NCBI GenBank assembly: GCA_977016875.1
Contig: CDRNST010000088.1
Location: 2,976,001 to 3,040,000, forward strand
Length of the DNA stretch: 64,000 nt
Reading direction: 5' to 3'
Origin: Pavona decussata
Taxonomy: Eukaryota
Shown here: in pieces, positions 4,718 to 62,917 of the stretch
Position numbering within the stretch: the first letter of the stretch is position 1
How the letters are laid out: every line of letters starts with the position of its first letter
Notes under the pieces: model-generated
What the model was told of the DNA's origin: nothing
Seen by the model: the letters and a program-made list of their open reading frames with translations, nothing else
Databases searched by the model: none
Made by a program: the position numbers and the translations under genes

Positions 4718-7700
4718 ATGTTCCTGTCTACGAAGGCCTTGCTTTTTATATCCACCAGCTGCCTTGTATTAATTAGCCAAGCAGGAGCGGAGCCCTGTTC
4801 TGGTAAGTTGGGTCGATATATTTTTAATTCATGTTCAAAGCCACGTTCTGCGAGGTTTTGTAAGTGTAGTGAAATGCGTGATAGAGGAATGCAGTATAAC
4901 CAGCGTGTTCTTCATCTGACCAGTCCAAATCGAAATTGATCTTGTCTGATGGCAACTTTAACTTGCGAACGCATCGTTTCTGTCAGAGCAGATTTTCGTG
5001 TCGATTTCGATGAAATGAACACTTCATAACTTTCAATAAACACTACTCGTGGGTAATACACGCAACTTAATAAAATCTATCCGCTATTCAGTAATAACAC
5101 TGCGGCATCCTTTCTCAGAACGATTAAACTATGATGCCTTTTGTAAAAGCGGTCTTTCCTCGCTTTCTCACTCACGATGGTTTAATTGTGATCCTGGGAA
5201 CATGGCGGCCGATTGCCAGGCCGATTTAGCACAATAGCTCGCTTCACGTTTGAGTATTTTTGAATTTTTGAAGTTATTGCTTGAGCATTTGTAAATTGCT
5301 GTTCCAAGAAAACCCGGCGGGTGCGAAAATTCACTTTAAGTTACATTAGCCACGGATTGAGCTGAAATTCCAAACAAGAGTCTATTTCATTGTGTAATAC
5401 ACTGTTATTGTTCACGAACAATGAAAAGCTATTTTGGTTTTCCACCTCCTTACGCACAATGATTTATATCAGCTCGCCGACGGACAAATACGGTAAAATG
5501 TTACGGTAAATGCACAAGCATATGTAGGCATAACTTGCAAACTATACTACCAGCAACATACCAAGGAAACACGCAAGGGTCATTAGAAAAGACAGTGACA
5601 TGATTTTGAACGGTAATTACACCTTTCAACATCACAATGTTCTAAAAGTACATCGGCAAAGTTTTTATTGCCAAAACAAGAACCCAGTTGGAGAATCCAA
5701 ATCACTTTTTCTTCTTTGCTTTCGTGTGAAGTTGGAACGAAGGAAAACGGTTGCCGGTCGGCATAGAGCATAATACTTTTGCCAACCACAGTGGAAGGTT
5801 CAACAACACAGTCGAATTGGGTACTGATCAACATCTAGTCTAATGTTTATTGCATTTGGAAAGTTAAGGGTCTGTGGAAAAAAAATGTTTTGCTTGTCGC
5901 ATCTTTCTCAAAACGTCAATCAAATGAAAGGAAATCTTTGACGGTCATAATTTGATGCCGCAAATATTTGCTCGGGTTTGTTGGAGAGAAAACAGAGGCC
6001 CCATTGTTCTCGCCATCTGATTTCGTTTTGGCTCTTTGTAGTCTTTTTAAATTCTTTCCCTGGAACTCGGCAAATTTGGACTTGCCGTAGTGCGGTCCCA
6101 AGCGGCTAGAACGGAGATTGTTTCCACACTTATGCGGCTTTTGTATTGTACGCTTTGGAAATCTCGGTACGGTGCGTTTAAACTTAAATTATTGTTTCTT
6201 CGTGTAAGATCCAGTACAATAACCGTCGGGTAATGGCATTGCAAATTCTGAAAAAGGAAATGGAACAATGGCGTCACTCTTATCAGCCCACGCGCGAGTT
6301 TCAAGGTTACATGTTTTACTGGCTTTGCCTTTTGTCAATAAATGTCATAGAGCGCACAATCCTTACATCCTTTTGTTCTTTAATTCCCTCTCATTACATA
6401 TGCACGCAAAGAAAGAAGGCACTTAAGAAAGATTTAAGTGGGAAACAGATTTGGAAACTGGCAAAATGGGTCATGATATCGTGGTTTTTATTCCCTTTTC
6501 ATGTAGTTGACAATCCTCAACCGACTTTAGAAGTTGTTCATCAGGGACAGTTCATTTGAAGATATGTTTTGTCTCAAAACAAGTCTTGATAGTTTTAGGA
6601 GAGCTTTTATCTTGTAAGAGACAAACTGCAGCCAAGTTGGCGCTGAGCATTCGGACACAGCTGTTGTTTTTGTTGAATTAGATTTTGGGGGTATCAACAA
6701 TCGCTAGCCATCTCAAAAGCAAATTCGACACAAATCCCGCTCAGTTCTGGCGTGTATCTTCTAAATCACTCGGAAAGGATTTTGTACATCTTATGTCCTT
6801 TTTGAAATCTTATATCTCTTTTCCTATTTTAAACCTCCGGAAGCTGCTGTTACTGGATCAGATAGTGATCGATTTTCCCTGTACTCCCTGTTTAAGAATT
6901 ACAAGTTACGCATGTTTTATTGAACGTTGATTTACAAGGTCATATTTGTTTCAACTGGTTCAGCCAGCGAATTCTTGAATTAGTTTTATTTTTCGCCTTG
7001 GGTGTTGATCACAGGAACACAAGCAAGAAAGAACATCCTTTATCCACGTCCGTCCATTATAGATAGCTTGTATTAATTGCAGTTTGCGAATATCGAAGTA
7101 TACGTAAAACTGAAAGAAAAAATTCTTGAGTTGTGTATAATCTTTTAGAAATACAAGGTAGTTTCACTGACTTGCCATCTCCAAGACATTTCGATTTACG
7201 TCCACATATTTTGCCGTAAGTCTAAAAATATTCACTAATTAAACAGGGTTTGTTTACGCGATCTTTTACCGAATGTTGCAAACTTTCATAAGCTACACTG
7301 AAGCTATCAAACTTAGCGCAGTGCTCGAGGAAGGCCATTAGATTTGATTTGGATTACCCTTTCGTTTAATTTTCATTCATTAAGTGGTTCTTATTCGTTC
7401 GGCATCGTTTGCCGTACTCGTTCGTTCACTGAAGACTTCAATATCAAATTAATTTTAACCTCTTCCAACCATTAAATTCTTAGATGATGAGTTTGGTGTG
7501 TATTTTTGCGTAAATCTCAACCATACACCGTGCATAGCGACACAGGGACTTATTAGTTTTAATCTACGAACAATAAACTCACTGAAAACCGTCCAGAAGA
7601 GAGAGGTTAAATTGCACGACACTGTGGTTACAGCCGAAATCTGAGCTATGAGTGACCATAGCAGCTGCGGTTGTTACCGTACATGCACGGGTCGACCTTG

Positions 7701-61900: not shown

Positions 61901-62917
61901 TTTTGTAACGAAAGCATTTCACAAAACCAATTCCACTATAAGCTATTCATATTCCACACACATATGCTGCTTCGTAGTAAAGCCACAACACTGAATCGCC
62001 ATTTAAGAGATAAACCGCTTAAAAATTGTAGGGGTTATTTTGGATGCTGTATATCGGATTAAACTGTTCTCATCAAATGTGTGAAAAAGAAAGCCTAGAT
62101 GTGTCGAGGGTAATACCTAACTTGACACTCGATCTAATCACTTTACTTGGTAGAATAGCGTGTAATAAATGAACACCAACTTAAGTTATGGTTTTGCTAT
62201 AACGCTCTTTTAGTCAACTTTAGTAGGTCTATCAGCGAAGCTCAACTGATAACAATATCAGTAACTAGTCAGTATCAACATGCATGCGCCTTACCGGCTT
62301 GTGGCCGATATTTTCGAGCGCCTCGCAACTTTCAGTTGATATCCTCGAAACGTATATAACGTTGTTCCCTTTAATCTAACTTTACCTACCATATTTGTCG
62401 CCATCTCTTCCAAGGGCGTCAATTTTTTTTCCATGTATACGAAGATGGCTTCGACTAGACCGCGAATACAGCTGTGTTTCTCGGTGAAACGGAAGGCTTC
62501 TTGAATCGCTGCGTCTTCTCTCTGTCCTTACGTGGTTGTCTAAGTACTTTTTCTGTGGTCAGATTATTACAAATCGTGGTTAATCGTGTGATAGTTAACA
62601 TTATGTGAATAAGACTGCAATAATATTCAAAATTCTCTGGCTTACCTCATGGCTTTGTTGTCCCAAGATGAAGGAAATCAGGCAATTCCTATGACGATAT
62701 ATCAGTGTTTATAAATTTACTATATCTAGACAATCCTGCGAGACTTCAAGTGCCACAAACTGGTCGCTTGTGAAATAAAAAATGTTCCTTTGAATGTCAA
62801 ATCAAGTCACTAAGTGCGAATTACTGGGCTTATACCAAAAGAATCAATGCGATATACTTACAAAGAGAAAAACAATAGGTATCGTCTAGATGTCGCTGTA
62901 AACTTGCAGTTCGGCAT
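58902..62917 (-). CDS. FGF8: FGF8/17/18-type ligand, paralog B, ~272 aa, 5 coding exons
   Basis: complement(join(62862..62917,62646..62688,62390..62552,61032..61138,58902..59351)) = 819 nt, GT-AG, intron phases 2/0/1/0. Signal RRYLLFFSLNCLISFILG; NHVRTE...QLYSRSSRSHLRI..KIDALGRDGDKYAKLVVESDNFGRVRIRGALTNYYLCI...CVFYETYAENHYTEF...W..AVSKRGK.R.G....GQRTVQFIER, a close match to FGF8-subfamily signatures. Confidence 0.92.
60195..60242 (+). repeat. (ATT)n microsatellite
   Basis: Direct reading; FGF-B last intron. Confidence 0.95.

Follow-up and report, generated by a model that had tools for sequence, protein, structure and literature searches.

The window analyzed here is a 64 kb stretch of a stony-coral contig (Pavona decussata, genome G000, contig C88, bases 2976001-3040000) that carries four host genes recognizable by Pfam and open reading frames, namely a fibroblast growth factor (FGF) receptor gene, FGFR-1 (4718..18917, + strand), a Sprouty gene, Sprouty-1 (30254..31000, + strand), and two FGF8/17/18-like genes, FGF-A (35180..48745, - strand) and FGF-B (58902..~62917, - strand). 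Pfam and PDB matches confirmed these genes at the positions and on the strands assigned to them by an earlier sequence-only reading, and its statement that they are the only host genes holds within the window according to the Pfam screen of open frames, the array itself running on beyond. The other 99 open frames of at least 72 amino acids matched no Pfam family at an E value of 0.01, a screen able to miss a so far unrecognized gene made of short exons, and a six-frame comparison with orthologous loci returned only FGFR, Sprouty and FGF exons as conserved coding pieces. The only other recognizable coding sequence of the window belongs to a Mutator-like transposase. The stretch has 39% GC, shows no CpG depletion, and is interrupted by three gaps filled with N (14144-14291, 19840-20075, and 44233-44379).

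Tracking of the array for 200 kb past the window (C88:3040001-3240000) extended it to about 240 kb with the order FGFR-1, Sprouty-1, FGF8-like A, B and C, Sprouty-2, one unrelated gene, an FGFRL1-like gene, an FGFR-ectodomain fragment, and FGFR-2. FGFR-1 is separated from Sprouty-1 by 11.8 kb and Sprouty-1 from the nearest FGF8-like gene by 4.2 kb, and between 4.7 and 106.8 kb (positions in kb count from the window start) there are six FGF-pathway genes and one transposase, with no other Pfam-recognizable gene. Elsewhere the genome contains other FGF tandem clusters, Sprouty-domain loci and FGFR paralogues, and the three classes lie near each other only on C88. A rough estimate based on random placement gives about 4e-7 expected FGFR-Sprouty-FGF triples at the observed spacing. 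This expectation, together with the arrangement found on metagenome-assembly contigs from ENA (L001, and the contig whose loci are L022, L026 and L027), indicates that the tight cluster of non-homologous FGF-pathway genes proposed from the letters of the window is real and conserved, and is due neither to an assembly artefact nor to chance.

Gene structures in the window

FGFR-1 was delimited by Pfam matches, best PDB matches and spliced RNA contigs, with exons queried singly. A hydrophobic exon resembling a signal peptide opens at the ATG at 4718, as read from the frame and with predicted 5' exon edges, and is followed by three immunoglobulin (Ig) exons that matched Ig_3/I-set at 9215-9556 (E 4e-15), 10033-10350 (E 3e-17) and 10916-11344 (E 7e-13). 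An exon within 11709-12419 encodes the transmembrane helix, the juxtamembrane region and the kinase N-lobe with its GxGxxG and VAVK motifs, while kinase exons within 12658-12846 and 12976-13335 matched PK_Tyr_Ser-Thr. Further exons occupy 13360-13484, 14644-14714, 15304-15343, 15464-15561 and 16338-16441, and the last exon begins at 18059, its coding part ending at 18420 and its RNA contigs reaching about 18917, all of these features being on the + strand. The PK_Tyr_Ser-Thr matches went down to E 4e-15 and covered the profile to its last position, all 60 of the best PDB matches of one kinase exon were FGFR1-4, and the second Ig exon aligned end to end with domain D2 of FGFR1-4 in its best PDB matches. 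Direct reading of the kinase also located an 11-residue motif and the YY activation-loop pair. FGFR-1 combines features that define an FGFR: three Ig domains, with the D2 type among them, and one transmembrane helix ahead of a tyrosine kinase of the FGFR type. Between 9556 and 10033, no acidic open frame of at least 20 amino acids that could encode the FGFR acid box was found, although a shorter exon may be present there. RNA contigs from four runs of four studies contained five GT..AG joints and reached a depth of 70-290 on exons versus a depth of only a few in introns, which marks them clearly as RNA, and they contain the kinase exons complete and spliced; such contigs indicate the presence of transcript and not its level. 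FGFR-1 is thus transcribed and correctly spliced, and its last six exons are fixed by the RNA contigs.

Three further observations concern this gene. The APE motif reads A-L-E in FGFR-1 (14644-14714) and in its L001 orthologue (L001:589-666), and A-I-E in FGFR-2 (C88 ~3218320-3218400); RNA contigs show no difference from the genome at the A-L-E of FGFR-1, and the altered motif is apparently a conserved trait peculiar to this group of cnidarian FGFRs. A short element at 17560-17810, within the final intron of FGFR-1, reached an RNA-contig depth of about 1200-2500, versus about 100-200 on exons, and since many of the contigs there continue into unlike sequence, the element is highly repeated and transcribed. 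The second Ig exon is present in about 11 copies with 83-91% protein identity, which lie in longer open frames (C143:2700529-2784091, C8:4341232-4413217, and C200:999673-1078804), and no comparably close copies of the transmembrane/juxtamembrane exon were found in the genome. Judged by these similarities, the copies seem to represent kinase-less genes derived from an FGFR ectodomain that have expanded into a family.

Sprouty-1 consists of a single coding exon of 248 amino acids plus the stop (frame 30254-30997), which matched PF05210 at E 6e-23 (81.8 bits, cut-off 25). PF05210 was the only domain found in this frame, and no EVH1 domain, the absence of which separates Sprouty from SPRED, was detected. 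The sequences N-V-E-Y and D-E-Y, noticed by eye in the N-terminal half, are candidates for the conserved N-x-E-Y-type tyrosine motif that serves in Cbl/Grb2 binding, and RNA-like contigs contained 0.7-0.97 of the words sampled from the gene. Orthologues were found in Montipora (84% identity) and Oculina (78%), in addition to those on long ENA contigs, the Montipora orthologue being annotated as "protein sprouty homolog 2-like".

Three conserved non-coding blocks precede Sprouty-1 on the + strand (29190-29338, 29732-29835, and 29984-30064, spanning 29190..30064), as detected by blastn and tblastx. Their blastn identity is 75-92% at the same relative positions in L001, L022 and L025 (the last being another metagenome-assembly contig from ENA), unlike the Sprouty proteins encoded at these loci, which are only 48-65% identical. 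The blocks match by tblastx in all frames and are probably the promoter or the 5' untranslated region of Sprouty-1, and their degree of conservation is consistent with regulatory constraint.

The exons of FGF-A were mapped by a genome-wide scan and by tblastn with the full-length database orthologues P0032-P0034, which aligned collinearly in five coding pieces with predicted edges: ~48745-48695, encoding the initial methionine and a signal peptide within a hydrophobic N-terminus, ~48599-48500, 48395-48219, 42103-41996 and 35473-35183; the stop codon occupies 35180-35182. The FGF-B exons, identified by PF00167, PDB and tblastn matches, lie at 62552-62385, 61139-61035 and 59348-58905, the stop codon occupying 58902-58904, and a first exon that begins with the ATG at 62917 and runs for 19 codons up to a GTAAGT donor is plausible from the letters. 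Exons 2 and 3 of both genes match the beta-trefoil core of PF00167, those of FGF-B at E 1e-11 and 9e-7. In the PDB comparison, FGF-B exon 3 was closest to FGF18 (1e-8) and FGF8b (3e-8), versus about 1e-5 for FGF1, while the FGF-A orthologue P0033 from Acropora palmata, which is named FGF18-like by NCBI, matched FGF18 at 3e-23 and FGF8b at 7e-22, some 15 orders of magnitude better than FGF2 (2e-7). Since both the FGF-A orthologue and FGF-B exon 3 prefer FGF18 and FGF8b, the label "FGF8-like" is justified in terms of pairwise matches. An assignment of FGF-A and FGF-B to the apical-organ ligands NvFGFa1 and NvFGFa2 was rejected, as the latter belong to another paralogous group that is not assignable to a subfamily. 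Both genes (35183-35280 and 58905-59000, - strand) and the FGF-A orthologues P0032-P0035 encode a long polybasic C-terminal tail with an R/K-L-L-R-K core, which may serve in heparan sulfate binding or nuclear targeting.

The Mutator-like transposase lies within an FGF-A intron on the - strand (36902..38782) as an intact frame of 626 amino acids (36905-38782) that matched PF20700 at E 3e-83. Matches to its family number at least 79 across the genome, the closest being only 68% identical; the transposase represents either a low-copy lineage or a frame under selection.

Integrity, extent and conservation of the array

The three gaps were considered separately in relation to the gene order. Gap 1 (14144..14291) falls inside an FGFR-1 intron, where it is skipped by the GT..AG RNA joint 13484>14644 in all four runs from the four studies, and the kinase exons on either side are collinear with the gap-free L001. 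Gap 3 (44233..44379) falls in the FGF-A intron between the exons at 48395-48219 and 42103-41996, and the orthologous proteins align collinearly with both. Gap 2 (19840..20075) is intergenic, between FGFR-1 and Sprouty-1, and an erroneous join at this point would have falsely placed an FGFR beside Sprouty and the FGF genes; none of the data examined cross it. Nevertheless, on N-free loci of two other species the FGFR 3' end adjoins the Sprouty-1 orthologue at a distance of 6.7 kb (L001) and 17 kb (L026), and because these contigs keep the adjacency without any gap, a mis-join at gap 2 is very unlikely. Considering also that gaps 1 and 3 fall within introns of collinear genes, an artefactual origin of the cluster appears extremely improbable.

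The layout of the window recurs in L001, in which Sprouty is 50% identical to Sprouty-1, with FGFR kinase exons on the + strand, Sprouty on the + strand 6.7 kb downstream and an FGF8-like gene on the - strand 3.9 kb further. At L026, the FGFR 3' end lies 17 kb from a Sprouty-1 orthologue that is inverted. None of ten small open frames that surround Sprouty in these two contigs (L001 and L022) had a Pfam match.

Phylogenetic analysis of the Sprouty proteins resolved two ancient, well-supported cnidarian clades. Sprouty-2 has orthologues in Montipora, Oculina, Nematostella, Exaiptasia and Actinia, and the proteins of the latter three group with it, which shows that NvSprouty, as judged by protein sequence, corresponds to Sprouty-2 and not to Sprouty-1. 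According to the same tree, the L001 and L022 lineages would be neither stony corals nor sea anemones. In Montipora, the orthologues of Sprouty-1 and Sprouty-2 share one chromosome, and in Oculina the two Sprouty locus tags (G006055 and G006059) are four apart, so that exactly three genes would fit in between, as in the coral array. The Sprouty-2 orthologues P0061 and P0051 come from contigs equal in length to those of L001 and L025, respectively, and are probably located on them. The age of the cluster is established within anthozoans only.

Downstream of the window, FGF-C, an FGF8-like gene on the + strand (76.0-85.7 kb, C88 ~3052055-3061708), stands head to head with FGF-B and is followed by Sprouty-2 on the - strand (105.7-106.8 kb, C88 3081724-3082839; PF05210 E 2e-27). 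Sprouty and its nearest FGF gene are tail-to-tail on both sides of the array, as after an inverted duplication. The FGFRL1-like gene (156.9-163.7 kb, C88 3132873-3139703) combines three Ig exons with an acidic stretch, a transmembrane helix and a short tail and lacks a kinase, and beyond it lie the FGFR-ectodomain fragment (195.5-196.8 kb, C88 3171475-3172784) and a complete FGFR-2 (220.7-243.5 kb, C88 3196663-3219479). The unrelated gene is represented by an ADP-ribosylglycohydrolase exon at ~142 kb (C88 3118247-3118663, + strand; E 7e-22). Transposable elements of this region comprise a long interspersed nuclear element (RVT_1, C88 3103706-3105498), a hAT-like element with DUF4371 and a hAT dimerization domain (C88 3188588-3190864), and a Crypton-like element with DUF3504 and a tyrosine recombinase in an FGFR-2 intron (C88 3206572-3207876). 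Near the end of C88, the - strand carries additional kinase exons of FGFR type that share 60-63% identity with FGFR-1 (3276418-3276546 and 3332000-3332164).

Relation to known FGF linkages

Linkage of FGF-pathway genes has been described previously. A single Nematostella scaffold carries FGFRL1, FGF8a and FGF8b, and NvSprouty is situated between the first two (Bertrand et al. 2009, BMC Evol Biol 9:226, PMC2754479). The same study reported linkage (<10 Mb) of FGFRL1 with either FGF8/17/18 or FGFR across a wide range of animals that spans cnidarians and vertebrates, and proposed a linkage of FGFR, FGF8/17/18 and FGFRL1 in Urbilateria as probable (PMC2754479); for the linkage between FGFR and FGF8 it cites Itoh & Ornitz 2004 and Birnbaum et al. 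2005. The linkage on Nematostella scaffold-51 resembles the Sprouty-2 side of the coral array, since in both FGF8-like genes are followed by Sprouty and then by FGFRL1 or an FGFRL1-like gene, and because the coral order FGF8-like, Sprouty-2, FGFRL1-like matches the Nematostella description, the general idea and this side of the array were already known. However, the scaffold-51 linkage was defined as <10 Mb and includes no kinase-bearing FGFR, whereas in the coral a kinase FGFR is located 11.8 kb from Sprouty-1, and the Nematostella Sprouty has neither FGF nor FGFR within 10 kb, whereas the coral Sprouty-1 is 4.2 kb from an FGF8-like gene. The bilaterian linkage group of FGFR, FGF8/17/18 and FGFRL1, as far as the cited account presents it, likewise brings a receptor and an FGF8-subfamily ligand into one region and shares the idea of an ancestral linkage, but it operates at a megabase scale, contains many unrelated genes and, in the proposal as cited, does not include Sprouty, in contrast to the kilobase-scale coral cluster that is exclusive over ~100 kb.

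No coral or cnidarian FGFR-Sprouty-FGF cluster was found described beyond Bertrand et al. (2009) in the literature searched, the coverage of which was incomplete. The tight FGFR-Sprouty-FGF8 adjacency was not found in that literature, and the looser Nematostella linkage has been published (PMC2754479). Three aspects appear to be new: the kilobase-scale proximity of a kinase FGFR, Sprouty and FGF8, its recurrence in other anthozoan lineages, and the duplicated, partly mirror-image layout.

In vertebrates, Sprouty, Sef and other genes are co-expressed with FGF8 and form the FGF8 synexpression group. The coral cluster is similar to this group in joining a ligand with its induced feedback inhibitor, and in Nematostella twist mutants fgf8a, fgf8b and sprouty fall together; however, a synexpression group is defined by expression and the coral cluster by position, FGFR-1 being the only gene whose transcripts were directly seen. 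In humans, FGFR1 and FGF17 are loosely linked on 8p, FGFR2 and FGF8 on 10q, and FGFR4, FGF18 and SPRY4 on 5q, and the Fgf8-Fbxw4 landscape is an example of a genomic regulatory block. Genomic regulatory blocks and developmental clusters such as Fgf3/4/19 (PMC3420111) share with the coral array a long-kept adjacency and conserved non-coding sequence nearby. Known FGF clusters, however, consist of tandem paralogues or of a target gene plus bystanders, whereas the coral cluster assembles the ligand, the receptor and the inhibitor of one pathway. Regarding the properties of a regulatory block, synteny over a long evolutionary distance was found, as the triplet is present in L001 and the FGFR-Sprouty pair in L026, while conserved non-coding elements distributed along the array that would act on a target gene over bystanders were not found, such blocks being detected only within ~2.4 kb upstream of Sprouty-1 in the comparable parts of the 20-kb loci.

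Origin and regulation of the array

The interpretation that we favor, and consider reasonably probable, is that the four genes belong to a conserved anthozoan FGF-signaling synteny block, of which they form one end in the ~240-kb array, and that their adjacency has probably been kept by shared or interleaved regulatory DNA. Each gene class contains old paralogues, and each Sprouty faces the closest FGF gene tail-to-tail; most likely, therefore, local and in part inverted duplication enlarged the array. An older neighborhood of receptor, Sprouty and FGF8 would then have been duplicated in place, with the Sprouty-2 side corresponding to the FGFRL1-Sprouty-FGF8a/b linkage of Nematostella. Based on the families to which the products belong, the secreted FGF8-type ligands would bind the receptor at Ig2-Ig3, its kinase would activate Ras/MAPK, and Sprouty would be induced and damp the signal. 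The genes of this circuit may have stayed adjacent through regulatory DNA that is shared between them or interleaved. By analogy, the response of the Nematostella genes to loss of twist gives a hint of co-regulation, as may the conserved blocks upstream of Sprouty-1.

Several observations weigh against this interpretation. Sprouty on the L022 contig is inverted and has no FGF within 19 kb on its far side, and the order and spacing of the genes are therefore not rigid. Within 10 kb on either side, the span covered by these neighbor checks, neither FGF nor FGFR was found next to Sprouty-1 in L025 or next to the Nematostella Sprouty (OW051990.1, ~6.67 Mb); the same applied to the Sprouty of the amphioxus Branchiostoma belcheri. 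The microsynteny comparison called for by the sequence-only reading gave a divided answer, with the FGFR-Sprouty-FGF order recovered in L001 and FGFR-Sprouty in L026 and no FGF or FGFR within 10 kb in L025, Nematostella and amphioxus. Moreover, an unrelated host gene (the ADP-ribosylglycohydrolase) occurs inside the extended array, the upstream blocks may be merely the promoter of Sprouty itself, and the placement of L001, L022 and L025 comes from the Sprouty tree alone. A rival to this interpretation is a neutral relic, in which an old linkage and its local duplication simply went unbroken in slowly rearranging anthozoan genomes, with no regulatory coupling. Order, orientation and spacing do differ by lineage (Sprouty is inverted at L026, and FGF is absent within 19 kb at L027 and within 10 kb at L025), the 10 kb around the Nematostella Sprouty are free of pathway genes, transposons have inserted freely in introns and spacers, and the unrelated gene interrupts the array. 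We regard a neutral relic as possible but rather doubtful, given that three non-homologous classes have remained together even though the Sprouty proteins are only ~50% identical, that ~100 kb with six pathway genes contain no other recognizable host gene, and that the Nematostella orthologues respond together in twist mutants.

A far older origin has also been considered, in which the common ancestor of cnidarians and bilaterians would have possessed a tight regulatory block, with the FGFR-FGF8/17/18(-SPRY) linkages of vertebrates as its remains. The loose (<10 Mb) linkage of FGFRL1 with FGF8/17/18 or FGFR from cnidarians to vertebrates and the linkage proposed for Urbilateria agree with such a scenario (PMC2754479), as do the human positions on 8p, 10q and 5q, but megabase-scale linkage is not equivalent to a regulatory block, Sprouty stands alone within 10 kb on each side in both amphioxus and Nematostella, and the Sprouty-1 clade contains no sea-anemone or bilaterian member that was found. 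Owing to this last point, the adjacency of FGFR-1 and Sprouty-1 may be younger than Anthozoa. We therefore hold the scenario to be very unlikely, and the ancestral eumetazoan regulatory block envisaged by the sequence-only reading was not borne out by the Sprouty neighborhoods of Nematostella and amphioxus, nor by that of L025. An idea to which we would give slightly more credit, while still judging it unlikely, is a co-regulated "signaling cassette" in which ligand, receptor and inhibitor have occupied one chromatin domain since before the hexacoral split and which would be the tight ancestor of the dispersed bilaterian linkages of FGFR, FGF8 and FGFRL1, perhaps also of SPRY.

Clusters of non-homologous genes that serve one signaling circuit are rare in animals. 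If the shared regulation proposed in our favored interpretation is true, the locus would be a compact natural test case for the DNA-level wiring of a feedback loop and could show the origin of the bilaterian FGFR/FGF8 paralogon. The blocks upstream of Sprouty-1 and the short spacer between Sprouty and FGF provide concrete targets for deletion and reporter work in a tractable relative. Even if the array were a neutral relic, it would still be a useful synteny marker for the orthology of cnidarian FGF, FGFR and Sprouty paralogues.

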